From: Orbicella franksi
Lineage: Eukaryota
Length of the DNA stretch: 64,000 nucleotides
Direction of reading: 5' to 3'
NCBI GenBank assembly: GCA_964199315.1
Contig: OZ116701.1
Span: forward strand, 13,640,001-13,704,000
Under the pieces are notes generated by a model. That model searched no databases, was not told the origin of the DNA, and saw nothing but the letters and a program-made list of their open reading frames with translations. This document shows, in pieces, positions 10,449-64,000 of the stretch; within the stretch, counting starts at the first letter, position 1, and each line of letters starts with the position of its first letter. A program made the translations under genes and the position numbers.

Positions 10449-10894
10449 CAGTCAAACCTCAATTATCCGTACCTCGATTACCCGGATTTCTCAATTATCT
10501 GGACTTTTTCTCTTGTCCCAATTTTGTCATGAATATTTATTACTCATGATCAAGATCCTAGCAATATTCTGTTTAAAACTATAGCATTGAGAAGTGCAGT
10601 CAAAAGCGAGTTTTTTGCTTTTAAAGAGCAAAAGCAGTGCTTGCTCGCACGCATCGTAACTAATGAAGAACACTCAAATTAGTTCTGACTGGCTCAGAGT
10701 TGAGTGGTTCAAGATGTACAGAAGACCATATTGTTTTCCAAACAATTTGTAAAAGTGTTGTTTCACGATTAAATGTTGCTTGATTTAAACAGTTTTGTTC
10801 TTCATTAATATTCATATTTTCGATGATCTGGACCCTCGATTATCCGTACTATTTCATCTAGTCCCAATGATTCCAGATAATCGAGGTTCGACTC
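10449..10894. mobile_element. Tc1/mariner (pogo/Tigger-like) MITE
   Basis: TA|CAGTCAAACCTCAATTATC ... GATAATCGAGGTTCGACTC|TA: imperfect TIRs with TA target duplication. Confidence 0.8.
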
Positions 10895-11069
10895 TATGGC
10901 TTTGCAATGTTCACATCTAACTGACATAGATGGAACATGTTTTTGTAGGGTACACATGTACCTTTCCCACCTCACCCTCACCACTTTCTTGCCTCAAAGA
11001 CTAAACAAACATTAAAATTTACACCTTAGCACCTTGGCGACAGGCAGCCCTCAAAACCATCCCAGTAGT

Positions 11070-11480
11070 GCACTCTGCACTAAAAAGGAGGCAGTAGAAG
11101 AGAGAGAAGAAGGTTAAAGGAAAAGTGGATGCAGATCACCGAGGCAGGGGAAGCGGTCCATCCTGATTGCCATGCGGTGCGCTCTAGAAACAGAATGGCA
11201 GCAAGTAGAGCAAGTAAGAATAGTTTCAAAAGCTTTGCCCACAACCAAAAAAGCGTTTCGAAATAATCCAAAAGAGAAGTGCCAGGCCACGAACAAGGAA
11301 ACAACTTGTAAAGACGGGAACACTCAAGACTCCAGAAGAAGAAACAAGATCATTGAGAGCAATGCCAGCAGTTATTTCACAGGGCTTAGAGTAGGTGAAA
11401 GAGTGGTTCAAATGAGAAAAGAAAAAGCATTGAGAGCCTACATCCCTTGTCTTTGGAGAAAACGTTAAAAAATGTCATGC
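11070..11480 (+). mobile_element. Second Sola-like remnant (N-terminal portion)
   Basis: Frame-joined PRTRKQLVKTGTLKTPEEE...SGSNEKRK...FGENVKK is homologous to PRTRKILANHRVVKTPEEQ...SGSNEKRV...FGENKKK at 1615-1810. Confidence 0.7.
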
Positions 11481-42900: not shown

Positions 42901-43267
42901 ACCAGTCAAAAATAGGTTGTAACGCTTGTAATAAAGATTTTCATAAATCTTTGTTTAGTTTATCTCTAGTAAATCTCTCTAGTAAAAGTTTTCTTTTTGA
43001 CTTATTTTTTGCAACTTTCTGGTGGCTTCTGTTTTACATGTAATTTGCTAATTGAAATGCAAGAAGTAAGGTGCCTGATTAATTGTAATCCATCATTTAG
43101 CTTATCTCTAGTTAGTCTCAGCTCCTAGTATCAATAATATGTAAATGATAACCAGTCAAAAATAGGTTGTAACACTTGTAACGCTTGTAATAAAAACAAC
43201 GGAAACAACTCATTAACCTGAAATTCATGGCTGTAAATGAATGAAAAACGAATGAAAGTTTTGTTGT

Positions 43268-43303
<36 letters not shown>

Positions 43304-46300
43304 GGGAAGCAGAGTTAATGATAACATTTTTATTGGAGGGCCAACAAGGATCTTGACAGCTTTGCCTTCCACAGTTGTTACACTTTCATTACTGGCCAGT
43401 CCATTTGTCAAGTGGCATGTTGGTACAGGGGTGGCTTTTATATCATGGTTAGCATGCTACACTCCAGATCAAGTGGTCCAAGTTCTAGTCCTGATGGGCA
43501 TCATGGCATTGTGTTCTTGAGCAAGACACTTTACACTCACACGGCCTTCTCCATCCAGGTGTTTTTAAATGGTACCCACAAATGTAATGCTGGCAGTAAC
43601 CCTGTGATGGACTTGCCTCCCATCTAGGGGGAAGTAGAAATACTCCTAGTCACGTCATGGAACAGAAACTGGAATAAGCTCTGGCAGCTGTATGGACCAC
43701 TGCCCTGACACAGACTTCACCTTTTTTTATTTGGCAATAGTACGGTGCATGCTGTAAAACCAGGAAGAGCCACCAGAGAGTCTTCTGCAGAATTGTTTTG
43801 ATAGGAAACTGTATCTGTTATCTCTTACCTTATGTGCACAAAAAGTCTCACACCAGCCTGTGTAAAACTTTGATCTTTGCTGTCTCATGAGTACAAATGT
43901 ACATGTATGCATGGGTTACTTTTAGCTCTTATTCAAGATAATCATCAGGTAGTGTATCACATTACTTAAGTGTCACTACTGTTAAGCTATTTCACATTAT
44001 TTACACATTGTTAACCTGCTTGGTACATTGATAGTATTCATAAGTAGAGTAAGTGACTTTTGGTATTGTCCTGGTAATGTGGTTTGTTGGTTGTTAAATA
44101 AAATTCGGTACAGTAAAAACAATGAAAGGAGTTTGATGATCTTCACTATTATTGTACAGTGTGCATGTGTGTGTGTGTTTTTTTTTTCAGGATTTTCCTT
44201 GCACAAATGCAGGAATTGGCTCCAATCTCACCAAATCGGGTACGGTGGAATGTGATGCAAGTATCATGGATGGACAGTCCTTGACATTTGGAGCTGTTGG
44301 TGCTTTAAAAGGTCAGTTGAATGATGGTTTATTGTATTATGCAGAACAATATGAATTATGAAACAAAACAAATGTCTGAAAAACATCTTGTGTTAATAAA
44401 GCAAACACAGGTAATGATATTGGGAGAAACTCATATAATTTCACTTAAGGAACACATTAATAAAAGTATTGCATCATAATAACTGTACTTAACCTTGCTT
44501 TGTAGGAGTGAGGAATCCCATCCAAGTAGCTAGTAAAGTGTTAGAAGAAGAAATGAAAGGATCGTCAACCTTGGGTCTCATTCCTCCAATGTACGTTCTT
44601 AACTTGTACTCAGGTTGTATAGTTATGTATTTCTTTTTAAAACGAATGCAGCCTTTACAGAACTAAGTCGCATAAGGGGTTGGTGTTTATCACCAGATTC
44701 TGTAACCTGAAATCACTAGGATTAATTTTTCCTTTTGTGTGATATCCTTACTCATTGTGGCTGTCACTCAGAAGTTTTTACAGGTTTCCCCAACACTCTA
44801 GTATCACCCATTCTTTACTCCTTGTTGTAGAAGGGCTCTATGAGAGTCAATTGTCTTGCTAGAGAAAAACTTATTGGAACATTCTCGAACTGAAAAATGT
44901 TTTTAAAACACACACATTTGACTGCCTAAACTGCAGTCTTCAATGGGTAAAATAATAAAAGAGGTGCTAACACTTCTAAAATATAGCGTGATAAATAGAA
45001 TCCATTAGATTAAAATTATGGAACTCAACTGAAGATTTTTTGCCAAAACAAATGCTGTATTGTCCTTATTAAGTAGTGGATGAGAGTTATTCTCTAAACT
45101 GGGGTTGTCATCAGATGCCCAGATTCCCAAAACCAACTTATGCAAAAATTGCCTTATAGCTGGAGTTATCATGTCTGCTTAGTTTTTTACATTGCTGATA
45201 ACACGTTAAGCTGATTGCTATTTTTTGACAGTGATATATTTTCAGTTTTCTTGCAGGAGAAGGAGCATTTCAATGGGCAATGGAACATGGTTTAACCACA
45301 TGTCCTGATGAAGACTTGATAACAGGTGACTGTTTTAATCTCATGCTTATATGGTCATATGCTTGGTGTTAAGGATTATTGTTTCCTCTTTTTTGGCTTG
45401 CTCCCAGTAACGATATATTAAGTGTTATATTACAGGATTTTACTTGCTCTCTTCTTTCGTTTTTTAATTAGAGGTAACACACCTTGCAGAATGGAAGCAA
45501 AAAAAATTTTGAAGTGTGTAGGTGTTCAACATTAGCCATAAATACTAGCTCAGGTTGAATGCAGTAGACAAGATTGATTGATAGCATCTGAGAGAGCATA
45601 ACAAGGTAATAATGCGGGTGCACCACCAAGGAATGGTGTAACAGACTGGTGAGGCAAACAAATTTCAGGTGGGGAGGGGTGGGGAGGGGTGTGTACCCCC
45701 TGCACCCTCCCCCTAGATCCGCCCTTGTATTGAACCAAAAAGAAAAACATGCCAAGCAAAAAGACAATAATGATGTACATTGTTAAAGCATAATAGGTCA
45801 ACCATAATAGATAAGGTCAATGGAATGCACAAAAATATTGAGTACCGTACTCTCCCATTTCCAGCTTGGTATACTCATACCTCTTGAAAGCTATGAAATT
45901 TTGTTTGTTCATTATTTAACAACAGGGGCAGTTAAACCTGAATCTTGGAGACTGAAGACCCAGCACCAACCATTTATTTGAAACCATAATTTATTTACAG
46001 ACCTGGGTCTCAACGCCTGTGTTAATGAAAAGTAACAAAATCATAGAATGTTCATCTATGTTCAATATTAACTGAGTGGTCAATAAAAAATACTGAATTT
46101 CAATATTGATGATTGCTTTGGTAAAGGGAAATAACAGTAAATTATCCTTGCAAATGATTAATTAATTAATTAATCTGACCTGTCGGCTGCCTCCTCATTC
46201 TAATTTCTTTGACAAGACAGTGGAGATTTCAAAGAAGCAAACGGAGCACTAACACTTGTAATCCCATGTTTCCCTGTCTGTGCTTGTCATTAATTTTAAC

Positions 46301-49300
46301 TGCTGATTTATTTACTATAGAGAGAAGCACCCAAACATGGCAGAAGTGCAAAGCCAGGCTTGAGTCATCGCAGAGTGCTGTACATGAACACAAAAGATGT
46401 CGGCTAGAAAACCTTTGTGATTTGTCAAATGTAAGTACCCAACCACCTGTTTGTACCAGAATTCTTCTGGGCACACTCTGCATGTTTTGTAAATACCTTC
46501 ATTGGAGAATAGAGTGACTGTTGTATTCTAAAAGACTGAGAGATCTGTAATAAATGCATGGTCTCCAAGGTGGAGTTAGTAAATAAACCCCTTCAGGCGG
46601 CTGGTATGTCAGCTGATAATGTCCGTGGCTGAGAGATTGTCTGAAAAATGAATATTTGGCCGAGAAGTGAAGCTTCAAGGGCAAATGTGAAATTTTGAGG
46701 ACAATCTCTCAGCCAAGGACATTATCAGCCGAAATACCAGCAGGCCAGAAAGGGGTTTATTTATTTTATAACCCTCCCATTAATTTTCATATCACAATTA
46801 AACCACTCGTAAACATGGTAAAAAAGCCAGTGGTGATCTGATGGGGAATGCACGTGATTGACGGAAGCAAGCAAGTACATTTGATTGGTCTAACTAACTT
46901 TATTTCCACCGTGATTGGACCAAAACTTGACAAGCTGTCACGTGAAATTAACTCTCGTAACACCCCGTAGATCAAAAACTCAAAAACTTGATGTACTTTC
47001 CAGAACAGCATTTGCAACCAGCTATTTAATGTCACTATCGCTGTACTCAATAAAGCGAGTTTGGTCTCCCTCCATGTAAAATAAGAGAAAGGAAAATTTG
47101 AAACTCTATTGTTGACCATGTTTCTCTTCGATGGAAGCAATCGGAGGACAAATATCAACACAGGCGGGGATTATTGCATGATGACTGTCCTGTGAGTTTT
47201 CACCATGTGACATAAAGTAACCAATAAAATCATGCCAACCAATAACCAATAAAATCACCCGGTGGGTTATAATATTTAATAATCGTCACAAGCATTTATG
47301 CAAGGTGTAATATTTAAGCTGTGTAAAGTCTGCGTGCGAGCCAAGTGGCCCATCAGGCCGGAGCTTATCCTGTTTCTGTAACATGAAGCGACTAGGAGTA
47401 TTTCTACTCCCCCCTGGATGGGATGCTAGTCCATCACAGGGTTACCCCCAGTACTAAGTTCACCGGTACCCATTTATACACCTGGGTGGAGGGAGGCACT
47501 GTGAGAGTAAAGTGTCTTGCCCAAGAACACAACACAATGTCCCCGACCAGGGCTCAAACCCGGACTGCTATATCCAGAGACGAGCGCACTAACCATGAGG
47601 CTACCGCGCCTCCCACAATTTAAGCTGTTTGACAGCAAAATATAAAACTGCCAAAAATAGGTCAAGTAATGAATAAAATCCTTTCTTAATAAACACCATG
47701 CCTGAGGAAACTGTTAGAGTCAAATAAATGGCAGGTCCACCTCACCAAGTTTGATGAATGACAGGAGAATTTTAATCAAGAACATTTGGTACTGGATTGT
47801 TTTTAAGAAGAAAAACTAAAGTTGAAAATTGCTAAGAATCTTTAGTTTAAAAGTAAAGTTACATTGTTGCCATCTTAGTTATAATTAGTAAACTTGTGGT
47901 CCCTGTCTAGGAAGATGACAATATGGATACTGTTGGCACAGTGTGTATGGATACACATGGGCATCTCTGTGCTGGTGTGTCTAGTGGTGGTGTGGTTTAC
48001 AAAACACCTGGTCGTATTGGTCAGGTTAGCCTTCACTTGCCACTGTATTGTGACTATAGAGACCCGTTAAGGTCAGCAAACACACGGCTCCTTTTTTCTG
48101 AGAACAATTTTATTTTTGTTAGTTTTACATCGAGCAAAATTCTCCTTGACCCTTTCAAAAGCTCTACTTGACTGCCTTTTCAAACCTCTACCAAAACACA
48201 TGACCATATTAACATACAACTGATTAGTTTTAAAGGTTAGTGTGAAGTAAACATGCACGCCCAAATTGTGTGACATTTCAGCTGGTAGGGGGACCATTAT
48301 ATTTTAATGACTGCAGGGTGCACTAAAGCCTCTCCCTGTTGTTGTCTGGGGCACATAGAAATTTGATTTGGACAAGTAAATCTCTGTCATGATTTGTCTG
48401 AGCAGCATGCATGCTTCTGGTGCATACAAATGCTATTTAAAAGAAAATGAAAATTGACTTGACTTTGCCGAGATATTAATTTACCCAGTGATGAAAAGGG
48501 GGGTCTTATCCAAATGATTCGCGCTTACATAGCAAAGCATTACTGAAATTTGAAGGCTACAAATGCACAGGTAATGGTTTTATTTTTGTACTGGTTGCCA
48601 ACAGTCAGCAACAGTCAAACTGCAGAGCAAATAAAAGAATTGCATTTGCAATATGAAATTACACTTGAAAGGCTAGAAATATTCACAACAAAATATTACT
48701 TACAATTCTGTTTGGTAAATCCATACATCTTTACACAGCTCTTTACATGTTCTTTTAGCGGATGTGTTCAGTTGATTGTTAGGCAAGCATTTAAATACAT
48801 TCCACCTATTTATATAAAAAGGCTAATTCGTCCCCAGATCCTTTGGGACTGTATTTTGGCACCAAAACGGTACAGCAACACAAAAAGTTATTTACTTAAA
48901 GTATAAGTTGAAATTTTTTACTGCACCAAGCGCAAATCACAAACTCTATGTTCTTTCTTTATTTGTTTCTCTTTTTGAGAAAATACCTTGGACAAGCATG
49001 TTTTGATTTCAGACATCCAAGTTATTCTCTGATTGTTGTCTCAAGGACAAACGAATCATGAAATTGATTTCTAATTCTGCTGCTTAAAAGACTCAGACGC
49101 AGAAGGATCAGAATTCTCCCCAACCTCGTTCCCAGTTTCTTTCTGATCTTCCTGCCCTCCAGAGTGAGAGAGGAGGGTGGAGGATGTAAGACCCTGGGAA
49201 CGAAGTTGAATTATCCATGTCAATGTAATTTGTGATCCTCACAAGCAATTTGATCTATCTATTCAATCAGGCAGCTGTGTATGGCAGTGGCTGTTGGGCA

Positions 49301-52300
49301 ACAACACTTGAAGCTAACCAAGTGGGTGTGGCCTGCTGTACATCAGGTCTGGTTGATTTTTTTTATTTTCGTACTATGATTATTATTATTATTGTTACAG
49401 TAGAATCCTGGTAATCCAGTTAATAATGGGCCATGAAATCATGGTGGAGTAACAGTCTGAACGTATCAGTCATTCACATACAAGATTTTGTTGGTGATGT
49501 TTATGTATTGAAGGCCAGTGTTTTTTACTTTATTTTGTACCAGTTGAGAACATTAATAGTGACTGTGCAATGATTCAACTCCAAATGACTTGTAGGTTGT
49601 GGAGAGCATTTGATTAAGACCATGCTGGCAAACGAATGTGCAACGTTGGCTTTAACGAAGTAAGCAGATCATTGTTTCTTTTATTTTCATAAGGCGACTT
49701 GTTATATGCAAACTTCTCTGTATTACCATGGAAGGCTGCTTACCACACCACTGTGGACAGCTTCTTTTGTGTTAAGTATTTCTAGCCAATCAGAAAAGGC
49801 TCTCCAGTTTTTTTAGCCAATCAGAACCATAGGAATAAACTAGTGTGCGTTTTCCCGCGCTTGGCGCTAGTGAAATGTTGTTGCCTCATACTCTGACTGG
49901 TCTATTCCGAGTGTAAGGTTATTTGTGTCACGTCCTACACAGACATTCTTATTGCCCATCAGGCAGTCCTCTCCATCATGGGGTAGAAAGATTGCGTGAC
50001 AAGCTGAAAGGGAGAAATCAGAAATCGTGGCGATTTTCCGTTCCCGCAGACAAAGCACTGCTCTCCAGAGTTAGATTCCCCCAGTTGTCAGTCCAAGAGT
50101 ACGTTCAGTCAAAACTTTACCGTGTTTCCAGGAAACACCTATCGTCACAACTGTTTGTCGAATTAGTTGTTTTCCAGTAATTCATTTGTTATCCCGTACG
50201 ACGTAAAGTAAAACATAGAGATAGCTGAAAAAGGGTAACTGATCAGATAGGATATTTTCCTTTTGCTTGGTCTTATCGCAAGTAGCCTGGATCTAGATGC
50301 TGCATTGCTAAACAATAACACCTGACGTTGTCGAATATTAGTTCGCTTGTTGAAAGTCTATATAAGTCTCATTGTCAACTTTATAGGAAAGCTGACAACA
50401 CATTTACTGCATGAATGGAACCTTTTACAACTCAGATTATTATCTAAAAGTGCCAAAAATAAACAGGTATTTGAACAAATTCCTATTTTTAAAAAACCTT
50501 TGCCGTCAGATTAGAAGCTTCAGTTTTACTGGCAGGTGAGCTAAGAGCGCACACTTCGAACCAAACAGTAAAGCGGAAAAATATGCTCATAAGACAGACA
50601 GGTCCTACAGTAAACCACAATTTGGTAACACTTCTCCTAATAAATGGCGAACCTATCGCTGTTAAATGTTTTATTTCTTTATTTCTTTATTTTTTTTTTG
50701 TGCCTTGCTTGGAAAGTAGCGTAGGCCAACTGACATAGAGCTGAAGTTAAAGAGGTTTCCAATGACATCTAATCCAATTTCGCCCGTCTCTGGAGGTGTG
50801 TTAAAATCGAATACTTCAGCAACGGAAAAACAATTTGCGCGTTGTTAGTTTTGCAAATTTGTTATGTGTAACAAGTGCTTTCTCATGCTAGCTTTGCTGA
50901 GTAAAAAGAAAATTAATTGCATTTCTTTATACTCTCTAGAGTATGCTGTACTTTTGGAATTGAACCAAATGACTAGCTTATGTAGTAGAGAATAAAGGCT
51001 TCAGTTTTGAGTTAGCGGAAGACCTCAGGCAAATTGTTTATAGACTCGAAGACATAAGTTCCCACATTTTCTCACAATGATCGTATGGAATGTTGTTGTA
51101 CAACTGAGAGGTTTGTAATCTGTAGAGTCGCAACCTCTATGGCTAGGTTCTTTTTTTCTCGCAACCTGTCGCAAATTGACAAAATTTCAATAGAGTTAAG
51201 GACTATACCACTTTCATTTGTGTTTCCGTCTCCAGGGATGCAGTCAGTGCTGTTCAACAGGGACTTGGTGACAGATTTTTAGGTAAGAGCTTAGCATGTG
51301 TCTACTATATCTCGAAACAAATTCTGATTGGTATGGGAAGTGGGATTTAACCCCACAAATACGACCACTGGCGGCCAATAAAAACCATGTTCACATTGAC
51401 ATTAATTTGCCCGCATAGTGTATTAGCTAAACACACGGGATTAAACGATGATATTGGCATATTCCTTTGAAAAAGAGTGGATGAAGAGTAAGAGGGTTAA
51501 TCGTCATGTAGGCGTTGTTGGGAAGGTAATCCCTCACAAGTTATTTTTAGACACTCGAGCGTTGCTTGTATGTTTTCGCGGAGAAGCCACTTGGACTATC
51601 CAGGTGAGTAAAATCTGCATGACCGGGATAGCGTTTTCTACTCCCTCTTGGGACTTCCTTAACCGACAGTGATCAAAAAAACACTTGAGAGGGATTTCCT
51701 TTGGTATAAGACCATTATGAGAGATTAAGGGTGCTTACCATATGTCAGAATACACCTGTTGAGATGACTTTTCAGCAATGGTGGGGTTTTTCCAAAATCA
51801 ACAACCCAACCGAATAAGATGGTGCTTACCACTTACAATTCGAATTACCGTAATTGTTTTTGGTTGATGAGAGACTGGAAACTGGAAATTTAGCAAATTC
51901 GTAAGGAAATTTCCGCCCTTCCGTTCCGGACGGGAAAAGAATGTCAACCTCTGGAGGTAGTCTATAATTTTCGAAGGGATTTTCTGGAAAATGACTATTC
52001 CATTTGACCTTCAACCAAAATTTCCGGATTTTTTGCCAAGTGGTAAGAACCCTTACTCTCTTGCCCTTCATCCTCTTTCACTTTGAATAATTTCACGACA
52101 GGTGTAACTTAGTTCTGAATTCCTGACGACTTTTTTTCATAGTGCAGTGAACGCAACTGACACTTTCCTGGCTTTTTCTCAGGTTCAACTTTCCTTTCAT
52201 CAGTGGAAAAGAAATTAGGAGGGGTGTTGCTGCTACGAGTGGAGGGAGGGGCTGAGGGTGCGAATGGTAGGTTTTCAAAACGTTGAAATGTTAGTGTTGC

Positions 52301-54012
52301 AGTTTGCCGTTATGACATGGTTGATGACGTGTTTTTCAGTTTGTGCAATCATAGTTAATAGAGGGGAATGGTTATGAGACCCGGCAAACATCAAAGGAGC
52401 AAACAAAGATGCCAAGATTTATGTTGGAAGGTCCACGACTGTGCACAATCTTTTGTTCTGTGTTCATACACTATGCATGATTTACGTAATCAAAACGTTT
52501 CTATTGGTTAGTTCCTCGGTCAGTAGTAAACAACTATTGTGTTTTGTGCACGGTCAAGGCCAAAAAAGAGAACAAAAACTTTATTAACTATGGTGCAATA
52601 TAGAAAGAAAGAGTGTATCAATTTAGAATATTGAAAGGCTGAGTAACCTATGATTAGGCGAATTTTCTCCCCTCTTATATCACGGCATTTTAGTAAATAA
52701 AACTGCGGAAATAAACTCTCCTGATCACAGGTTAATATATTGAAGTCTTGTGAAGTTTCGAGCCTGTACAGATTCACCCGTGTTCCTGGATATTTTATTT
52801 TGTCCTTAAAATTTAACTTACTCAGTTATGTAAATGTAGGTCGATTCCAGTTTGGGAACAAGACTTATTGCAACTTCTTCCCATCTTTGCTCGATTGTAC
52901 ATGTTATTTCCTCACGGTGTAAAGATTGCTTGGCTGAGAACAGGAATTTGGTTACCAAACGTTTTTGTTTTACTGTAGACTGTACTGTTGATCTGGTCTG
53001 GGGTCACACCACACAGAGCATGTGCATTGGCTACATGGCAGAACAAGATGAAAAACCAAAGGTAAAAAATGAAACTTTATTCATTTCACCTGCCCTCTGC
53101 TCCTCGAAGACACAAATTAAAGAGTTAATGGGACTCACGGACATCAACTGAAAGTCAAACGTTGTCTTCGTTGGCGCGTTATATCGACTATGAAACAAAA
53201 AACCCGGTACTGACCGTGGTTCACAATAATAGGTTCTCAGAGCGGTTTTCGATCGAGTATCGTAAAACCAACAAGTAAATGTTAAAAGTATTGTTAAAAA
53301 GACGCCTAATGGCGGTATAAATCAACCGACGTTTCGGCATTACTGCCTTCTTCAGGGTGTTTAAGCTGCCACAGCTTTAACACCCTGAAGAACGCAGTAA
53401 TGCCGAAACGTCGGTTGATTTATACCGCCATTAAGCGTCTTTAACATTTATATTACTTGTAGTTTAAAAGACGCTACGCAGTTTCTTCAATACTATCGTA
53501 AAACCAAAACTAAACCAATTACTTGCCAGTTAGACTACTCAGCCAATCTTCAACCGTAGTAAAACGAAAACCTAAGTAATTGCCTGATTACTTTCGACAC
53601 TCAATAGAAAACCGCTCTGAGATTTCCCGAAGTCACAACAGTTTCACTTTTATGAACACAAAGAAGCTCTGTTATTTAACTGATGGGTCCGATTCTGAAG
53701 CTGAGCTCCAAGAAATGTGATAGTCCAGCCGAACGACACAGTTTTCGTAGGTGCGAAACTAATATTTGGTTTCATTTGGATTTGACCCTACGTTGAAGCT
53801 CATCTAGTCACAAAATGACAGTCACATTTGTTTGATCCATATGGACCACCAAGCGCTTAGTTTTAAGAGTATATTTAGTGGATAGCTGAGCGCTCCGTCT
53901 AACAATTACATGTCCTTTCTTTGTATTGAAGGTGCGGTTGTCTCGCACAGAGAAAGGACAGCAAGATCCACTGTTAGTTGAGGGCACGGTCTACAGGTTA
54001 CCTCATCGATGA
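39954..54012 (+). CDS. TASP1: Threonine aspartase 1 (taspase 1), 14 coding exons, 1164 nt, 387 aa
   Basis: Exons: 39954-40035, 41546-41613, 42463-42531, 44191-44311, 44506-44590, 45246-45325, 46321-46430, 47911-48024, 49271-49346, 49596-49659, 51236-51282, 52183-52266, 52979-53061, 53932-54012. All introns GT-AG with compatible phases. Motifs [21 protein letters not shown]...[14 protein letters not shown] autocleavage site, SSGG...[37 protein letters not shown]. Confidence 0.96.
42736..43195 (+). repeat. ~200-bp direct duplication (period ~249 bp) in TASP1 intron 3
   Basis: 42736-42934 and 42985-43195 are near-identical. Confidence 0.95.
43259..43302. repeat. (GTT)n microsatellite
   Basis: Read directly from sequence. 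Confidence 0.95.
43428..43728 (+). mobile_element. tRNA-headed SINE with CORE-like body (older copy)
   Basis: TGTGTTCTTGAGCAAGACACTTTAC...ATCCAGGTG...AATGGTACC...GTAGAAATACTCCTAGTC; same family as 47325-47616. Confidence 0.8.
46581..46763. repeat. Imperfect inverted repeat (~60-bp arms), MITE-like
   Basis: AAATAAACCCCTT...GATAATGTCCGTGGCTGAGAGATTGTC pairs with GACAATCTCTCAGCCAAGGACATTATC...AAGGGGTTTATTT. Confidence 0.75.
47325..47616 (-). mobile_element. tRNA-headed SINE with CORE-like body and 11-bp TSD
   Basis: TSD ATTTAAGCTGT at 47312-47322 and 47618-47628. tRNA-like head and CTTGGGCAAGACACTTTAC core on the - strand. Confidence 0.88.
47911..48024 (+). CDS. TASP1: TASP1 exon 8 carrying the Asp/Thr autoprocessing site and nucleophile
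   Basis: [38 protein letters not shown] matches the Ntn-hydrolase/type-2 asparaginase DTVG motif. Confidence 0.95.
49122..49208. mobile_element. Short palindromic MITE
   Basis: CAACCTCGTTCCCAG ... CTGGGAACGAAGTTG termini. Confidence 0.7.
51729..52052. mobile_element. PIF/Harbinger-type MITE
   Basis: TAA|GGGTGCTTACCA ... TGGTAAGAACCC|TTA: GGG termini with TWA flanks. Confidence 0.75.
53239..53618. mobile_element. MITE interrupted by a palindromic insertion
   Basis: TIRs AGAGCGGTTTTC and GAAAACCGCTCT. Internal insertion is flanked by a 14-bp TSD TATCGTAAAACCAA (53258-53271 and 53494-53507). Confidence 0.8.
53298..53442. ncRNA. Inverted pair of minimal type-I hammerhead ribozyme motifs (Penelope-like element terminal fragment)
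   Basis: 71-bp arms around a 3-nt loop. Each strand reads CCCTGAAGAA-(G/C)GCAGTAATGCC-GAAACGTC: CUGANGA core, stem II, GAAA, palindromic ACGU, GUC site. Confidence 0.65.
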
Positions 54013-54607
54013 CGTTTGTGTTTCTAATCAAATGAAATTAGAAGTCGGGACATCTGATTGTTCATCTACGAATGTTCTTTTATAAAGCACTTTGTTGCAA
54101 AGTAACATCGATCAAGAACGCCAAGTCGCTGGTGTTAAGCTTTCGCTCATTTTCCCCGTTTTCAAAGCCAAGCAAACTCGAACGTGTAACGCAACTCGTA
54201 ATCGCCTTTCCGACCACTGGTCACGGGGTCTGGGTACGAGATTAAAACAAGCTCTCAAGGTTCGCTTGTTTCGTAAAGCTTACTCGGTAAGAACGAAGAC
54301 AAGATTAGAAACAAAGGAGAATATTGGAAATTCGTTCTTTGGAGAGTTATTCTAAATCTAGGTAGAATACTCAATTTTATGTACAGCATAATATCTGATA
54401 TCAGGTGGTACAAATTGTAATTAGAGGTGTGAATTTTGACCATCAAATCGAAGTGAGTGGTTTTCTTGTCATGTCTATTTTATCACGCCATATTATTTTC
54501 GGCATGCGAATGGAAGTTTCAATTTTAATGCCGACTGCAAACAAACGACAGGAAAATAGTGAATATTTTCTATCCCAACAGATGAATTGTCTTAACTGGC
54601 CTCCAGT

Positions 54608-54639
<32 letters not shown>

Positions 54640-55376
54640 TTCATACGAGTAGTATGAGAGGCATCATATGAGGAATTACAATATAGCTGGTGGATGCCGA
54701 TTTGTGTTTTTTCCAGCGAAAACACCACCTCTTGTTAGTTGTGAACATTCTCTCTTCCTCGCCCTATATACTAAACCAAACAGAAAATGGTGTTTCCATG
54801 TTTTCTAAGAACATAATACATATTTGAGGTCTTGAAAAACTGCTAGACGAACCCTTGTTCCCCTTGTGCGTCCACTAACAGTTGTTATAGACCTTAAACG
54901 CGTATTATTCCTTAGGCAACACGGAACACCATCTATTATTTGGTGAGGATAATCTGATCATTTCCTTGACTCCTGTTACCCTTACGCTCACTAATTCAAT
55001 ATAAGAATAACAAGGTTATATCCTTCAAAACGTGGGAGCAGAAAAATAAGACGAAAATACGTACCCCTGGGCGGGATATTGTTTTTGAAAGAAAAAACGT
55101 GTAGTGGACTCAAGTCGAAATCAACTTCCCTTTCAATAACAGGCTTGTATCACGAGGGTCCCTCGGTGACCTACGACTACCACCATATAAAAATATACAA
55201 TGTTAGCAAATGGAAAGCAAACTGAGGAGCATTTTTCGTTAGATATCGTCGTTGAAGAGAGGTGGCTGTCAGTGGAGGTTCAACTGAGTTTGTATTGAAG
55301 GCCAGTGCCACTGTTTGCTAGTTTCATCTTAATTTTGCAGCGGTTCAGAGTATTATAGTGACTGCATGTTCACCTC

Positions 55377-58102
55377 TACCTCGATTAGGATCACTACCTT
55401 GTTCGTGGTGGGGTGGCTTGTGTGTTCCAATGACTCCTAGAGCTACGTGGGCGGGGGTCTTGTACTCCTGGTAGGGTCACCCATGCCGAACAGGTCGAAG
55501 GGCAGGAGCCAGACGAAGAGTGATCCCCTGGTCCTCCAGGTTGGGGGTTGGGCTGAGGGTTGATAACCCTCTCCCGTAAAAAAAAAAAAAAACTTAAAAA
55601 CATATCACAGAAACCAGAAGGAGAGAGAATTTACTGCAACATCAAGGAGACGCTGTGGCCGTACTTCGTGAGAGGAAACCAATGACGCACGGGGACCAGA
55701 CCCAACAGGACGTCCCCGGGCCGGCTAGCCCACTACACCCTTCAAGCTGAAAGTTTGCAACTGGAATGATCGAACGCTTTACGGAAGTGGCAACATCGCA
55801 CAGGCAGCAAGAGAGATGAAGAGGAAATGTATTTACATCGTGGGCATCAGCGAAACTTACTAGACGGGGCAAGGAGAAGTGCAACTTGCAGAAGGAGAAA
55901 CCAAAGTTTACTCTGAAAGAGATGTTGACAACCCAGACAGACAGGGAGTAAGTATATTGATGTCAAAAAGTGCTGTTGGAGCTCTGATGGAGAACACCCT
56001 ATCAGAGAAAGAATAACTCAAGCCACATACTATTCCAGATATATAAAGCTTACAGTCATCATGTATACGCACCTACAGACAATGCAGATGAACAAGCAAA
56101 GGAAGAATTATACGCAAGATTGAGATTTTTTAGATGGTGGAAATAATCATTATGTGATTATAGTTACTGAGAAAGACTTTGTGAAATGTGTGATATGAAT
56201 GAGCTAGTTATTAGAGGAACCCTGTTCCCGCACAAGACCATCCACAAAACAACATGGGTGTCGCCTGATGGACAGACCAGGAATCAGCTCGACCATGTCA
56301 TCATCAACAAGCGATTTAGGAATTCAGTATTAACACAAGAGTCTACGGGTCTGTAGATATTGGAAGTGATCATTATCTTGTGGGTACGACGATCAAACTA
56401 AGGTTGAGGAAGTCACCGAAAGAAAAGGTCGAATGTAGAGTGAAGTATAAGACGACTAAGTTGGAAAATGAGCAGGTACTAAAGACTTTTAACAAACCTT
56501 ACGTAATGGGTATCAGGCCCTAGAGAATTAAGAACCAGAAGTTGAAGAGGGAGTAGAGAGAGACTTTCGCTGATGAAGAAGGCATATATAGAAACAGCAG
56601 AAACAGTGTTGGGTAGGCCTTAAAAAAAAAGGATAATCCACGGATCAGCAAAGCAAAGCAAAGCAAAGCAAAGTAAAGTAAAGTGAAACTTTATTTAAAC
56701 TGACAGGGTAGCCTGTTCAGCTCAAAGGCTTTTATTCATAGGGGCCCTGTATAAATAACATTAGGTTAAAAATACAAATTTATGCACACATTAAAACTTT
56801 ATAACTGTACGTTAAAAACTAAAACTACATTAAAAAATCTAATTACAATACTATAATACTAAGAGAAACCACTAAGAACTATTACGATAATAAAAACCGC
56901 AAACTTAAAAACGGCAAAGCCCCTGGGATTGATTCTATCACAGCTGAGTTATTGAGAGCAAATACATTGATTGATGATAAAGATATGGAACCATGAAAGG
57001 GTCCCTGAAGCGTGGAAGCAGGTACTTATTGTTAAACTGGGAAAGAAAGGTCATCTAAGGGAATGCAAGAACTCAAGAGGATTAACGTTGCTTTCTGTAG
57101 TAGAGAAGATACTAGGCAGGAATGTTATAGATCGAATAAGGGGAGAAGTTGATCGACGATTAAGAAAGGAACAAGCCGGTTATAGAGAGGGCAGGGGAAC
57201 AACGGACCAGGTTTTCATTCTACAAAATATCATCGAGTAGACAAAAGAGTGGCAAGCTACGCTATATTTGAACTTTATGGCTTTTGAGAAGGTCTTTGAT
57301 TCGATCCACAGCGAAAGTTTATGGGAGATCATGGGGAGGTATGACATTCCGGAGAAAATAGTGAAAATGGTCAAAGTGTTTTACGATGGCTTTAGGTGAG
57401 CTGTGGTGGAAAAGGGGGAGATATGTGAAGGGTTCGACATTCGACCCACAACTGAGTAAAGCAAGGGTGCAATATGTCTGGATTCTTGTTCTTGATCATA
57501 ATGGATTGGGTGACGAGAAGAACAGCTGGAAATGGCGCGAATGGCATTAGATGGAGGTTTACATCCAAACTTGATGACTTAGATTTCGCAGATGATATAG
57601 CTATAATTTCCTCTACCAAAAAGTAGATTCAAGAAAAAAACAACGAAGCTAGAAGAGGAAAGCAGTCGAATGGGGCTCGACGTCAATACAGTTAAGACAA
57701 AAGTGATGAGGATCAATGCAAGAAACCGAGATAAGATTGTAATCAATTAAATGGTTATCGAGGGCGCTGATGACTTTGTATACTTAGGAACGAACGTTTG
57801 TTAAAAAAGAGGTGGCATGAAAGACCTTAAGAACCTACTGTCCAAAGCAACACGTGCGTTTCTCAGACTGAAGAACATATGGAGTTCCAATAGCATCTCA
57901 AGGGTAAGAAAGTTGAGACTGTATAAGACACTGGTGCTGCCGGTACTGCTATACGAAAGCGAGACGTGGAAAATGAACAAGGGAGATGAAAGAGCTCGCG
58001 GGAGGAAACGAGAACGATCGCAGCAGACCGAGAAAAGTGGAGAACCTTTGTAAAGGCCCTATGTACCACGAAGTACGAGGAGGACAGGTGAAGGTGAAAG
58101 TG
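55377..58102 (+). mobile_element. Near full-length RTE LINE, degenerate
   Basis: RTE-type 5' UTR. APE motifs (WN.RTL, GISET, NQLDHV, SDH) and RT motifs (KAPGIDSITAELL, QAGYREGRGTTDQVF, DLDFADD). GGTGA tail. Probable TSD TGTTCACCTC/TGTTCGACTC. Confidence 0.92.
56645..56920 (-). mobile_element. 3' tail of another LINE inserted in the RTE
   Basis: (CAAAG)n(TAAAG)n microsatellite tail plus AT-rich UTR-like sequence interrupting the RTE coding region. Confidence 0.6.
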
Positions 58103-58126
58103 TGTTCGACTCCAAATGACTTGAAG

Positions 58127-58177
58127 GTTGTGGAGAGCAATTGATTACGACTATTTGCAACTTTGGCTTTAACAAGA
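58127..58177 (+). pseudogene. TASP1: Degenerate duplicate of TASP1 exon 10
   Basis: ACTCCAAATGACTTGAAG|GTTGTGGAGAGCAATTGATTACGAC...TGCAACTTTGGCTTTAAC matches 49578-49659, with a ~13-nt deletion and a damaged donor site. Confidence 0.9.
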
Positions 58178-59269
58178 TAAGTAAATTACTATTTCTTTCA
58201 TTTTCTAACGAGAGAAAAAACGAGGAAAGACTGAGGCGAAGAAGCGCGAAACTTCTGGCCTCAGTCTCCCCGTTTTTTTTTCTCTCTCTCTCGCCTGCCT
58301 ATTTTTTCGCTCGTCCCCAACTACCGAGAGCCAGTAACAGACTACTCTCATCTGTGTAATTTCAGTGATGAACCTTACCTCGAGTACGGTTTGTTTTGGA
58401 AAGTTCATGTACAGCGAGCAGATTTTACTTCACTGTTGCCATGGTTTTAGTTCTTGACTCAACATCGAACGTGTTAATATAAAACCAAAGACTTCGCGCG
58501 GCAAAAGTTCCACGTGTCTCGATCAAAAACATTCAAGTTATAAAAAATGTCACCTGTCGGCCAACTTGGGTCTGTACAGAGAAATACCATACCCCAGCTT
58601 TTCAGTACAGTTCGTCGCCGTTACGGACCTTCCAGTCCACAAATAACGTGTATATACCGCTCTGTTGTTGTGTTTTTGGTTTTTGTTTTGTTCTTATCAT
58701 TGTCAGATCGTTTTTCAGAATAGCGTCTTAAGAATTATACACGTGATTGTGAGTCTGAAAAGCTGAAGCCAATTAACTAAAAACTGCATCGGCAATTTCA
58801 GGCGAATTTAGACATTTCTTGTTTTTACAATCAATTAATGACTTTGCGACACCTACCATTTTGGGTTTAACTTGTTCAGTATTATATGTTTTTTTTCTCA
58901 TTAAAGCTATCTGCTCGTTAAAATATTGTGACGTCCCCGAAACATGAACCCGCCGCGAGAATGCTGAAGACAAGCTTGTTGAAGCCGAACGTTACGTTGG
59001 TTACTTTATTCGACATTTTAGCCCTCGGAAAAAAGTGCTCCTTTTGGTATTTATTTCGGTATCTCTAGCGGTTAGTAACTTTCCCTCAGGCTGTCAAGTC
59101 TGTTCAAACCTGAGCGACAACACTGGACATAATTCCTGTACTCCTGAGTTAAAAATTCTTTCACATTGCTTTATTGCTTATTGCATGAATTAAACTTCGG
59201 GTCTCTTGGGTAATATACTTTTCTGAGACGGATTCGAGTTGAATTTTCCAAATAAATAGACGATTGGCC

Positions 59270-59715
59270 TGCGGCATATGTTTTCAGCAGATCGTTTGAC
59301 ACACGTCAAAACAAAAAAAGACAGTTCTGAAGGAGTATTAACGGACTAGACCTATTTGAATATTTTACGTTAGCATGTGATTTTCGACCTTCAAGAGCCA
59401 ATCATCGCCATAAACTTAAACCATTGCCCGCAAAGCTAAATATTAAGTATTCTTTCTTTGAAAATATAGTTAATGACTGGAATAATTTACCTAAAGACGT
59501 TGCGGAGGCAGAAAGTCTAAACATTTTCAAGAACAGGCTCAGATGCTATTTTACTAACGTTTTAGGGCATTTTTTAACTTTTTATTGTGAATTTTATTCA
59601 GATCTAAATTTGCGTTTTTAATTATTTTGGGAGTCAGACTCGAAGGGGATAACCTCTTTTGTCTCCTTTTACCTTTCATTCCATATGAATGTAAATTTGA
59701 ATTTGAATTGTGAAT
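59270..59715 (+). mobile_element. CR1/L2-type LINE 3' end
   Basis: HKLKPLPAKLNIKYSFFENIVNDWNNLPKDVAEAESLNIFKNRL is the typical CR1/L2 ORF2 C-terminus. Short (TTTGAA)n tail follows. Confidence 0.8.
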
Positions 59716-59849
59716 AAACAGTAATATACATAATATTATTCACATTCACGAAGGCGCCATGTCCATTTAGAGCATATGTATGTAGCCTGAGTGTCGATCT
59801 TGGGGGAAACATCTGTCATTAAAACTGCAGGTACCCATATCGTAGAATA

Positions 59850-60779
59850 ATGGCGAGAGCAAACTTTACTGGAAGTGAGAAACACTCTCAAACTATTGAA
59901 CTACTGGGATGTTCGACTAACTTTGCTGATGGCTCATTCATATATTTTACAGCATTCAACATTTTTCTATCCATTACTGCATTCGTTGGGAATACTCTGA
60001 TCCTAGTCGCCCTTCAAAAGGACTCTTCGCTTCATCCGCCGTCCAAACTCTTGCTTCGCTGTCTGGCAACAACTGATCTCTGTGTTGGTCTTATTACAGA
60101 ACCTCTCTATGTTACCTATTTGATTTCCTTGGTTTACGAAGAATGGAATCCACTTTGCCGCTATGTATTAGTCTCATCTAATATAGCAGGCTATAGTTTA
60201 TCCGCAGTGTCTTTGTTGACAGTTACTGCAGTTAGCGTGGACAGACTTCTCGCCCTGTTGCTGGGCCTGAGGTACAGACAAAAGGTAACTTCGAAGAGAA
60301 CATCCGTCATTGTTGTTATCTTTTGGGTTGTCTCCCTTGCTGCTGCTACATCGTACATCATAAATCCTGTTATAAACTTTTGGTTGGTCGTTATAGCTAT
60401 ATTGCTTTGTGTAGCAGCCTCGTTCGTCTCCTACACAAAGATTTTCCTTGTACTCCGTCAACACCAAACTCGAGTGCAAGACCCACAACAACCCAGCCAA
60501 GCAATTTCACTGAATATAGCGCGATACAAGAAGGCAGTGTCCAGTGCACTATGGGTGCAGTTAGCATTATTTGCTTGTTATCTACCATATGGTATAGTAA
60601 GAGCTACGATTGATAATGGTAAGCTATCGCCATCCAGTTTTCTCGCTTGGGAACTTGCAAAGACTTTGGTTTACCTTAACTCGTCGTTAAACCCGTTTCT
60701 TTACTACTGGAAGGTTGGTGGAGTAAAACAAGCAATAAAGGAGACAATCAGACAAGCAGTTTGCTGTTTGTCGAATTAG
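59850..60779 (+). CDS. Intronless rhodopsin-family (class A) GPCR, 309 aa, melanocortin/adenosine-receptor-like cnidarian expansion type
   Basis: Seven hydrophobic segments, GN in TM1, LATTD in TM2, DRL (DRY variant), W in TM4, CYLP in TM6, NSSLNPFLY in TM7, N-glycosylation site NFT. ORF is intact. Confidence 0.95.
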   Translation: MARANFTGSEKHSQTIELLGCSTNFADGSFIYFTAFNIFLSITAFVGNTLILVALQKDSSLHPPSKLLLRCLATTDLCVGLITEPLYVTYLISLVYEEWNPLCRYVLVSSNIAGYSLSAVSLLTVTAVSVDRLLALLLGLRYRQKVTSKRTSVIVVIFWVVSLAAATSYIINPVINFWLVVIAILLCVAASFVSYTKIFLVLRQHQTRVQDPQQPSQAISLNIARYKKAVSSALWVQLALFACYLPYGIVRATIDNGKLSPSSFLAWELAKTLVYLNSSLNPFLYYWKVGGVKQAIKETIRQAVCCLSN

Positions 60780-63064
60780 TTGTTTTCCAACTAATTCATT
60801 TGTTATCCTGTACGACGTAAAGCTAAACATAAAGATAGTTGAAAAAAGGAAAACAGATCAATGATGTATTTTCTTTTTGCTTAGTCTTATCGCAAGTAAC
60901 CTGGATTATTTTATAGTATTGAACTATTTTGAACACCGGAAGTATATAAAGCAAGGGAAAACATCTGCGGCACTTTTTCTTTTGTGTAGTTAAGCAAGAC
61001 TTTCTTGATGCTGCGTTACCAAACAATAACACCGGACGTTTTAGTACATTAGTTCGCCTGTTGAATGTGTATCTAAGTCTCATTTTTGACTTTATAGGAT
61101 AGCTGCAGGAATTGTCTTATGAGCATAATTTTTTTTCGCTTTATTGTTTGGTTGGAAATGCCTGGGCGCTCTAAGCTCACCTGCCAGTAAAACAGAAGCT
61201 TCTAATCTGAGGCAAAGGTTTTTTATTGTAGGAATTGGTTCAAATACCTGTTTATGTTCGGCACGTTTAGATAATAATCTGAATAGGTTAATCATTTATG
61301 GCTTTGCGCGCGCAAGTGTTATGTTTTGAATGCTGTTTTTGCATTCTCTTTCACACCTAGTCCTCTCAAACTTATTACATGTAATAAGCAAAGATTAAAT
61401 AATATTTTGCTATCATCTCTGTTAAAATTTGGGATTTAGTCTTACATTATAAATGCCCAAACAAAAGTGTTTTTTCTGTTTTTATGGCTTTATTTGTGAT
61501 TTTCATGAATTTACTTCGGTGAAATCTTCCAAAATTTTTACATCACATCGCTTCCAGCGGGATACGAATTTTAAACACGAAAAAAGTACGGTTTGTAAAG
61601 GCAGTTTTCTCGATATTTTTAAATTTATGTCCTTTACTAATCGTTAGCTTTGCGTGAGAAAAGACTGATCTGATTTCTATGTTTGAAAATTGAATAAATA
61701 TGGAAAGTAGCAGCTGCACTGTAGTCTCTTCTATTTTGCAGATTGATAGCCGTGGCAAGCAATCATTATAACAAGGATTCAGCTGTCTGTCAAAATCAAA
61801 CTTAAAAAGTTTATTTGTGTCCGACACAAGTATTGACTGTAGTTTGAGGCGTGAGTCTGGGCTCTCAAAGAGTTTAAATAACTTGGAATGTGTTCTTGTA
61901 ATAAGCATTAAACAAGGCTAAAATGGGACATTTTTAATGCCTCACTGCTCCTTAACGAGCATGGGCACCTCCCTTTTTTATTTTATAATTAAAGTTCTCA
62001 TATGATAAATATTCAGTGGGTAAAGTTTGAACAAAAATCTATTGGCAGTTCTATTTCAGGGGAATTACCTTAAACTTGAGTGCTCGAAAATCGAAAAAAA
62101 AAAAACATTTTGCGTGTTGCTGGCTAGTTTTGTAAAGTTCTCATATGTCTCGAGTGCTTTCTCATCCTGGGTTTGCTGAGTGAAAAACATTATTGATTAC
62201 ATTTCTTTATACTCTCGATAGTATGCTTTACTTTTGGAATTGAACCAAATGGCAAAGTGTTTATAGACTGAAAGACGTGTGCCCAGTTTCTCGTATTGCG
62301 TGTGTAGTCTTTTGCTGTACAATTGAGAAGGTCGTAATCTTTTAAGTTGTAACTTATCTTCCTACTTTTTTTTTTTTCTCCCAACCTGGTCACACAAATT
62401 CACAAAATTTTAATAGCGTTTTAGGACTACCGTGTGGTACGATATTTTTGCAAGTTCTAATTTTTGTGATTTTTCCGCTTTTTTTCCACAATCCGCAAAA
62501 ACAAGTTCCCGTGAAAAAAAGTTCCCACAAAAATTTCTCCGCAAAAATTTACTCTACTGACGGAATTACACGTACAAACATCACATGTGCAAACATCTCT
62601 ATCGTTTCTATCGTCCCGGCAGAAACAAAATCAGGGGATATGCATCAAGTTGTACCTTAGTTTTTGCTGATCAATTTCCAGAGCAGTCAGTCACCCTGGG
62701 CAAGATGAAGTTGCTGGTTTTAAGACAAAGCAAACTCGAACTTGTGACGCAACTCGTAAATCATGGGTCAGGGGACGAGATTGCGACTCCAGGCTCACTC
62801 GTTTCGTCAAGCTTGCGCAGTAGGGACGAAAACTAGAGGAACGAGATTAGAAATCCGTTCCTTTGGTATTTCTAAATCTCGATAGAATACTCAATTGTAG
62901 GCACTGGACAATATTCGATAGCAGGTGGTACAAATTGCAATTGGAAGTGTTGAATTTCGATCACCAAATCGAAGTGAGTGTATTTTTTTTTCTGTTTTAT
63001 CTATTTTATCGCCCCGTTTTATTTACAGCATGTAAATGGAATTTCAGTATTAATGCCAGTTGCT

Positions 63065-63412
63065 CAGGGATCCCCCACATCCGTTTAGAATATGAATAAA
63101 AGATTAACCTTCCTTTTTCGTGCGTGTTTTGTGTTTTGTGGCGGCCATTTTGAATTGTTTAATACGCGGTCTGCTATTGGGAGGTCTGGAACCGAAGTTA
63201 CTGAAGTCTGGGATGGGCGGGAAAATTCGCAAATTCTCGGAGGGAGCCGATCGCTCACCGAGAATAATCTTAGAGCTTCGAGTAGGCTCCGAGCGATTTC
63301 CGTAATTTAGGTTCCAGGCCTCGCACTAGCATATCGCACGTATTAAATTCAAAATGACCACCACAAAACACAAAACACGCGCGATTATTCTAAACGGATG
63401 TGGGGCTCCCTG
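63065..63412. mobile_element. Long-TIR (Mutator-like) MITE
   Basis: CAGGGATCCCCCACATCCGTTTAGAATA and TATTCTAAACGGATGTGGGGCTCCCTG, with the imperfect inverted repeat extending ~130 bp. Flanks TGCCAGTTGC/TGCCGATTGC (~10 bp). Absent from the paralogous site at ~54530. Confidence 0.8.
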
Positions 63413-64000
63413 TGCCGATTGCAAACAAACGACATGAAAACGACAGGATTGGAAGATAATAACTATTTTCTATACCAACCCTTCAAGAGTCTTTCTTTAA
63501 TATGAAAGGAATAATTGTCTTTACTGGCCTCTAGTGTTTTGTAACATAAGTATATTCCTTACTGGAATTAGAAGATAGCTGCTGGATACCAAAAACACCG
63601 TCCCTATTTAGATATAAATATTTTCTCTTTTTCATGCTTTACTCTAAAACAAACAGAAGATGGACAACAGAAGACAAGATTGGAAAACAAAGAAGAATAT
63701 TGGAAATTCGTTCTTTGGACAGTTATTCTAAATCTAGGTAGAATACTCAATTTTATGCACAGCATAATATTGGATATCAGGTGGTACAAATTGTAAATTA
63801 AAAGTGGGAATTTCGATCATCAAATCGAATTGAGTGGTTTTCTTGTTATGTCTATTTTATCACGCCGTATTATTTTCGGCATACAAATGGAAGTTTCAAT
63901 ATTAATGCCGACTGCAAACAAACGACAGGAAGTTAGTAAGTATTTTCTATACCACCAACAGATGAATTGTCTTAACTGACCTCCGTTTGTTTTTCAGACG

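Follow-up and report, generated by a model that had tools for sequence, protein, structure and literature searches.

A 64,000-nt stretch of the Orbicella franksi genome (assembly GCA_964199315.1, contig OZ116701.1, positions 13,640,001 to 13,704,000, forward strand; hereafter the window) carries an intact TASP1 gene (threonine aspartase 1), a decayed tandem copy of its 3' part, and an intact gene for a rhodopsin-class G protein-coupled receptor (GPCR) inside that copy. Each copy retained what the other had lost, as a preliminary description of the window had claimed: copy 1 has intact exons 10–14 and 16 nt of the GPCR, and copy 2 has the intact GPCR, a broken exon 10 and no exons 11–14. On balance, we lean towards a history in which a complete GPCR gene lay in intron 10 of TASP1 before the duplication, a tandem duplication bridged by a long interspersed nuclear element (LINE) then took place, and complementary deletions followed.

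TASP1 and the decayed copy of its 3' part

All 14 exons of Oculina patagonica TASP1 (P0390) were matched by tblastn on the plus strand of the window (39954–54009). Exon 8 codes for MDTVGTVC and is the D-T-VG nucleophile exon. Spliced exons 8–14 formed a single open frame with the terminus ...VYRLPHR, and the Orbicella faveolata orthologue is annotated as a 385-amino-acid (aa) Asparaginase_2 protein. Exon 10 was located at about 49596–49660, which bears out the exon numbering of the preliminary description, and exon 11 at 51222–51293. As outgroups we used the TASP1 loci of Oculina patagonica (L007), species N (ERZ26858540, L009, about 80–85% identical) and species Q (ERZ25067556, L010). A further species, M (ENA assembly ERZ25878340, about 85% identical), was compared through contigs that were reached with GPCR homologues and by walking along open reading frames (ORFs). 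The features of the functional gene are as follows.

39954–54012, plus strand: TASP1 (threonine aspartase 1), 14 coding exons, from tblastn searches with P0390 (Oculina TASP1) and P0128
49596–49660, plus strand: functional TASP1 exon 10, by tblastn and spliced model
49661–50010, plus strand: native 5' part of intron 10 (I5), aligning to species N intron 10
50011–50150, plus strand: orphan 140-nt segment X, between I5 and the GPCR tail
50151–50166, plus strand: remnant of the GPCR ORF, its last 16 nt (CLSN-stop), inside TASP1 intron 10; identical to 60764–60779
50167–50766, plus strand: remnant of the GPCR proximal 3' flank (Fprox, copy 1), by blastn and alignment to copy 2
50767–51221, plus strand: native middle and 3' part of intron 10, also in the duplicate; collinear with Oculina intron 10 25944–26061 and 26163–26309, and I3 matches species N
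54013–55200, plus strand: TASP1 3' untranslated region (UTR) and downstream sequence (D), to the end of duplication copy 1; species N homology extends to 55029, and the LINE 5' end is at about 55201

Positions 40–55.5 kb were compared with 55.5–64 kb by blastn, and the comparison was later repeated with relaxed scoring. The matches were collinear and on the same strand, apart from one short inverted block.

49574–49697 and 58105–58213, same strand: shared block, blastn E 3e-17
50151–50292 and 60764–60906, same strand: shared block, blastn E 6e-37
50292–50394 and 61003–61105, same strand: shared block, blastn
50432–50596 and 61282–61113, inverted: shared block of 165 nt, blastn
50826–51205 and 62101–62429, same strand: shared block, blastn E 1e-38
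54160–54790 and 62718–63663, same strand: shared block of 3' UTR and downstream sequence, blastn

The order and strand of five marker blocks agree between the copies, and the downstream duplication of the TASP1 3' part reported earlier is an old tandem one. The duplicate starts about 22–24 nt upstream of exon 10 and lies about 8.5 kb downstream of the original; the copies differ by 17–20%. Its features are listed below.

58105–58213, plus strand: start of copy 2, with 22 nt of intron 9, pseudo-exon 10 (58127–58177) and about 31 nt of intron 10
58214–59849, plus strand: unique region U upstream of the GPCR, about 1.6 kb, 78–88% conserved with species M
59850–60779, plus strand: intact intronless rhodopsin-class GPCR, 309 aa, with a 7tm_1 profile and the DRL and NPxxY motifs
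60780–62077, plus strand: GPCR proximal 3' flank, copy 2; the block 61113–61282 is inverted relative to copy 1 and species M
62078–62429, plus strand: native TASP1 intron-10 sequence in copy 2, ending 17 nt before the would-be exon 11 start
62430–62684, plus strand: sequence also found in species M units, there flanked by the intron-10 end and the exon 11 copy
62718–63663, plus strand: copy of the TASP1 3' UTR and downstream sequence (D'), about 80% identical to 54160–54790
63670–63994, plus strand: further copy of the short repeat 54295–54615, 92% identical, reaching the window end

Exon 10 of the duplicate is broken at 58127–58177, as had been noticed. It has lost 13 nt, which causes a frameshift, and its splice donor has changed from GT to AT. 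The reported absence of exons 11–14 was also upheld, since tblastn of 55–64 kb gave no match to them at E ≤ 5. After the intron-10 end and the extra insert (62078–62684), copy 2 jumps to D', and the exon 11–14 copies are gone.

The receptor gene at 59850–60779 is the only GPCR in the window. It starts 5.8 kb past the TASP1 stop codon and is flanked only by the broken exon-10 copy on the left and by intron-10-derived sequence on the right, in agreement with its earlier placement in what corresponds to intron 10. Nowhere in the window does it lie today wholly inside an intron of a functional host gene. The protein matched the Pfam 7tm_1 profile (PF00001) with an E value of 5e-23 and 82.4 bits (curated cut-off 30.5), and D131-R132-L133 and N281-P282-x-x-Y285 were invariant over 14 GPCR homologues. 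Compared with the species M copies, the ratio of nonsynonymous to synonymous divergence (dN/dS) was 0.43–0.56 at a synonymous divergence (dS) of about 0.25, and intact orthologues and paralogues are present. Judged from these sequence features, the GPCR looks functional. Region U, which is presumed to hold its promoter and 5' UTR, contained no Pfam domain and had no second copy in the rest of the window or in the outgroup loci.

The link between the two copies is the end of this gene. The 16-mer CTGTTTGTCGAATTAG, coding for CLSN-stop, is identical at 50151–50166 and 60764–60779, so the claim that functional intron 10 keeps the last 16 nt of the GPCR held. An alignment showed that the CLSN-stop terminus is common to 14 family homologues, indicating that the 16-nt remnant is a true gene end and not read-through into the intron. 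The GPCR-specific remnant in functional intron 10 consists only of this tail and about 600 nt of flank (50167–50766). The preliminary description had given about 1 kb of flank; the first 600 nt stood, and the rest (50767–51221) proved to be native intron, being collinear with Oculina intron 10. The collinear segment of Oculina, 25944–26061, aligned with 50767–50888, with 62078–62162 and with species M, and was missing in species N. From 31 nt past exon 10 up to the GPCR tail, the copies share no sequence.

Segment X stands just before the tail. Nothing matching it turned up in the window, in the duplicate, in Oculina or in species M, N and Q, and a protein search with the ORF covering X and the GPCR tail returned zero homologues. 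We also considered that X was a diverged copy of the intron 3' end. This was rejected, as the alignment score was within the range of shuffled sequences; X aligned to species N no better than shuffled sequence did, either.

Some further observations concern these genes. In the 5' part of intron 10, a block at 49775–49824 with two GCCAATCAG (CCAAT-box) motifs is kept in species N and Oculina at 70–76% identity, and the remainder of that part around the block is not alignable with Oculina. In the window, the block is followed by a TTTTCCCGCGC motif, which we take to be E2F-like. The CCAAT block could be a candidate intronic promoter or enhancer. Intron 13 contains a 145-nt near-perfect palindrome (53298–53442, 93.8% self-complementary). 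In O. faveolata, a second GPCR paralogue (P0002; L001 9950–11215) has 88% aa identity and a dS of 0.116 to the window GPCR. In the old O. faveolata scaffold, it adjoins a second copy of the LINE that lies at the duplication junction, which hints at a third unit in Orbicella, past the window end.

The same duplicate in species M and the age of its parts

Species M carries the same duplicate in a less decayed form. There, three contigs carry the unit as tandem arrays, the period being about 10.3 kb or 17.6 kb. Each unit runs from the LINE 3' part through pseudo-exon 10, U, a first receptor (GPCR-A), its flank, a second receptor (GPCR-B) and its flank to the intron-10 end, the extra insert, exons 11–14 and D. 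Pseudo-exon 10 has the same 13-nt deletion, the same GT to AT donor change and the same flanking junctions as copy 2 of the window, and the loss of I5 and the extra insert are also common to both. These shared lesions indicate that the duplication and the decay of exon 10 predate the split between Orbicella and species M. The exon 11–14 copies of species M lie between the GPCR flank and D and have open frames. Because these units retain exons 11–14, their absence in the window is a secondary loss. GPCR-A and GPCR-B differ by a dS of 0.16–0.20, which is below the between-species value, indicating that the ancestral unit had a single GPCR.

The species M contigs ctg56810, ctg58641 and ctg49293 (L002–L006) hold units of TASP1 fragments and GPCR with at least 12 intact GPCR ORFs. 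When the arrays were compared with one another, the GPCR flanks differed by about 2% and the parts from exon 11 to D by about 11%, which suggests gene conversion or a mosaic origin. An element of about 6 kb interrupts the 17.6-kb units immediately ahead of the exon 11 copy. It matches window positions 9944–11086 and is presumably a transposable element common to both genomes.

Distances placed species N outside the duplication. From exon 11 to D, they were 0.198 between the window and species N, 0.16–0.19 between the window and the species M units, and 0.24 between species N and species M; species N is therefore an outgroup to the duplication. Its intron 10 aligns to window positions 49661–50010 and 51172–51221. 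Species N had been taken as a clean pre-insertion state, and this was weakened, as it has its own deletion at the relevant site and has lost the intron block found in Oculina and the window. In the same locus (L009 17597–20285), an ankyrin-repeat gene lies on the opposite strand about 1.2 kb after the TASP1 downstream region.

For the tail and flank, three-way distances were star-like over 456 columns. They were 0.171 between copies 1 and 2 of the window (W1 and W2), 0.175–0.182 between W1 and species M, and 0.189–0.200 between W2 and species M. By this star-like pattern, the remnant in TASP1 and the duplication are of the same age.

Partial TASP1 copies were also seen in Acropora palmata. Two short "threonine aspartase 1-like" genes of 109 and 139 aa (P0130 and P0437; XP_074629714 and XP_074629562) join exon 8 to sequence resembling exons 12–13, on a chromosome-sized record other than that of the full-length TASP1. 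Such copies thus occur in a complex-clade coral too.

A LINE at the junction and the history of the locus

The space between the two copies is filled by one element.

55201–58104, plus strand: degenerate, frameshifted non-long-terminal-repeat retrotransposon (endonuclease, reverse transcriptase and C-terminal domain) that occupies the junction and meets copy 2 with its 3' end

Its parts are collinear on the plus strand. Endonuclease-like pieces begin at 55729 and are followed by RVT_1 fragments (56971–57237 and 57456–57623), a DUF6451 domain (57805–58050), the ORF end and a short GGTGAA-like tail that finishes at 58104. Intron 9 homology begins directly afterwards, at 58105. The 5' end, at about 55201, was defined by the second copy of the element in O. 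faveolata. The retrotransposon therefore sits exactly at the junction, in sense orientation, with its 3' end at the upstream breakpoint. No target-site duplication was found around it; its two flanks (...aaaatataca and tgttcgactcc...) have no sequence in common. The LINE 3' part also borders pseudo-exon 10 in species M, which dates the arrival of the LINE at the junction to the Orbicella/species M split or earlier.

This layout fits a LINE-bridged tandem duplication, in which the element would have brought the duplication about. In the L1-bridged tandem duplications described for human tumours, complementary DNA whose synthesis was primed at one site becomes linked to a break that lies further downstream on the sister chromatid (PMC7058536). 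The cases drawn in Fig. 7 of that study (Rodriguez-Martin et al. 2020, PMC7058536) likewise have a retrotransposon at a direct tandem junction, the 3' end of the element marking the upstream breakpoint, where it integrated, and the 5' end being fused to the downstream break. Those cases are somatic and megabase-scale, and the element is L1, whereas the coral duplication would be a germ-line one of about 8 kb, fixed and diverged by tens of per cent, and involves another LINE type. We also considered 3' transduction by a LINE in intron 9. This was dismissed: upstream of exon 10, intron 9 matches species N without interruption and contains no LINE.

We propose the following sequence of events. 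In the ancestor of Orbicella and species M, an intronless GPCR gene with its own flanks would have inserted, in the same orientation, into the intron 10 of about 0.7 kb of a single-copy TASP1. Soon afterwards, a segment beginning about 22–24 nt upstream of exon 10 and ending about 1.2 kb beyond the stop codon would have been duplicated in tandem. Most likely, a LINE retrotransposition intermediate bridged two sister chromatids, its 3' end priming in intron 9 and its 5' end joining a break downstream of TASP1. The functional upstream copy would then have lost the GPCR upstream region and all of the ORF but the last 16 nt. From the downstream copy, most of the 5' part of intron 10 would have gone, together with 13 nt of exon 10 and the splice donor; in Orbicella, exons 11–14 would have followed later. 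An intact TASP1 and a free-standing GPCR 5.8 kb past its stop codon would be the outcome, while in species M the same unit would have been amplified into arrays.

Direct observation covers the homologous blocks, the shared lesions, where the LINE lies and how it is oriented, the state of the outgroups and the relative divergences. We go beyond it in proposing that the complete GPCR was probably once inside functional TASP1 and that the LINE probably caused the duplication. Both copies share the tail, the flank and the native intron, indicating that the junction between GPCR flank and native intron arose once. Vertical descent is preferred because it needs only one insertion, one duplication and two deletions. 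A plausible reason for the losses is that a same-strand nested gene with its own poly-A signal would burden its host once a spare copy exists. The remnant contains an AATAAA at about 50640. A retrocopy origin of copy 2 or of the remnant was rejected, as the species M units retain introns 11–13 and no poly-A tract ends the flank.

Several points weigh against this history. A complete GPCR inside a TASP1 with intact exons was found in no genome examined. Intron 10 is about 0.7 kb in Oculina, where the GPCR query matched nothing in 38 kb, about 0.9 kb in species Q and about 0.4 kb in the functional TASP1 of species N, in each case without a GPCR. The functional TASP1 of species M was not found among the contigs reached, and a full GPCR occurred in that species only in units with a broken exon 10. 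The nesting was therefore not ancestral in the broad sense of the preliminary description, as Oculina and two other corals have an intron 10 of 0.4–0.9 kb without it; any nesting was at most brief and lineage-specific and arose at the earliest in the Orbicella/species M stem lineage. Vertical descent also has to fit four events into a short time before the species split. The contiguity of I5 and X with U and the GPCR body is assumed, the copies sharing nothing there, and the 140-nt segment X has no explanation under vertical descent. Finally, a later LINE insertion with a target deletion could give the same layout at the junction.

We consider it unlikely, though it is the strongest competitor, that TASP1 was duplicated with an empty intron 10, that the GPCR inserted only into the dead copy, replacing the 5' part of its intron, and that a part was later copied back. 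A double-strand break in functional intron 10 would have been repaired from the paralogue, with synthesis starting in the native intron sequence common to both and running leftwards through the flank into the GPCR end. The other end would have been joined without homology, X being filler, and the GPCR would never have been inside a working TASP1. This account agrees with the lack of a GPCR in intron 10 of all outgroups and with the filler-like character of X. It also agrees with the lack of any sequence common to the copies that links I5 or X to U, and with a right boundary of the remnant that falls in sequence common to both copies. It needs three events against four. However, the repair would be an unusual one, with homology at one end only, and simple deletions are far commoner than one-ended repair transfers between copies, which counts against it. 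By the distances, the remnant is no younger than the Orbicella/species M split, so that the transfer would have had to come almost directly after the insertion. The star-like distances of tail and flank exclude a transfer after the species split, though not an early one. A recent copy-back of the flank had been considered on the basis of blast segments, in which the flank was 88.5% and the native part 81% identical. It was rejected, since the single multiple alignment was star-like and the difference was a trimming effect.

Less probable again is a GPCR that was free-standing downstream of TASP1 from the start, with repeated unequal crossing-over among flank copies, or complex template-switching replication, making the flank remnant and the exon-10 fragment. 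The 120-bp exon-10 fragment and the intron-10 remnant would then be templated junction inserts. Short templated inserts at duplication junctions are a known trait of replication-based rearrangement, which counts for this possibility, and the arrays on the three species M contigs show repeated unequal exchange at the locus. However, the exon-10 fragment and the remnant would require separate events and be collinear only by coincidence. The native intron-10 sequence right after the GPCR flank in every unit would be left unexplained, and a GPCR downstream of TASP1 is absent from both Oculina and species N. The insertion of the GPCR into intron 10 before a LINE-bridged duplication stays the history that we favor.

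An artefact is very improbable, whether the shared sequence is taken as a dispersed repeat on many GPCRs or the duplicate as an uncollapsed haplotype or a mis-join. One short element, 54295–54615, is indeed repetitive, with three occurrences in the window and two in species N, and the older O. faveolata scaffold has the GPCR contigs in reverse orientation. But this element is the only repetitive part; the flank, U and the exon-10 block were not found again in the other 49 kb of the window or in 78 kb of outgroup loci. The divergence of 17–20% is far above the haplotype level, indicating that the copies are not haplotypes, and the order pseudo-exon 10, U, GPCR, flank recurs in a different species (M). 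The conflicting orientation is bounded on both sides by runs of N and was rejected as evidence, all discordant junctions being such runs. The window itself contains no N, and the GPCR and TASP1 searches assign it to a robust-clade stony coral. Its TASP1 3' region differs from O. faveolata (GCA_002042975.1, locus L001) by 1.4% over 1276 shared columns, and long blastn segments are 96–99% identical. The independent O. faveolata scaffold is collinear over window positions 49994–58640, with the GPCR on separate small contigs. The preliminary description had itself raised a dispersed repeat and a haplotype mis-assembly; neither found support in the sequence examined.

Related systems and biological meaning

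The closest precedent is that of the LRRTM genes in alpha-catenin introns. According to the account of Uvarov et al. (2014, PMC3933685), duplicated pairs of host and nested gene later lost either their host gene or its nested partner. As presented there, that system and the coral locus are alike in having a duplicated pair, with copies retaining the host gene or its nested partner in a syntenic position. The vertebrate LRRTM/alpha-catenin pairs in that account are on opposite strands, in very large introns, and derive from ancient whole-genome duplication, whereas the two coral genes share one strand and the intron is below 1 kb. The coral duplication is also local and partial, with only the 3' part of the host in tandem; the scars of both losses are readable, and the nested stage is a probable reconstruction.

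In corals, no amplified family is more abundant than the intronless class-A GPCRs, which grow via tandem duplication (Noel et al. 2023, PMC10236652), and the arrays of species M are in line with this. What differs here is that each unit carries fragments of the adjacent housekeeping gene TASP1 (pseudo-exon 10 and exons 11–14), which record where the array started and how. The locus is an unusually legible new example of known processes, none of which is new in kind.

Surveys of nested genes mostly record gains, and loss is seldom visible at the base-pair level. At this locus, the scars of both deletions can still be read, as can the duplication junction and an intermediate in a second species, and the locus could serve as a model case of un-nesting through duplication followed by complementary loss. 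The carried TASP1 fragments mark the origin of the unit, so the locus shows how a coral GPCR array can begin. Tentatively, a germ-line LINE intermediate may have duplicated the TASP1 3' part together with the nested GPCR, both freeing the receptor and creating a unit that was later amplified. It is likewise possible, with some doubt, that this unit (LINE, pseudo-exon 10, GPCR and TASP1 3' exons) was what multiplied into the receptor arrays of species M. If so, the locus would be a natural, fixed germ-line counterpart of the LINE-bridged duplications of tumours, and LINE-bridged duplication would be a route for un-nesting genes and for seeding the expansion of gene families.

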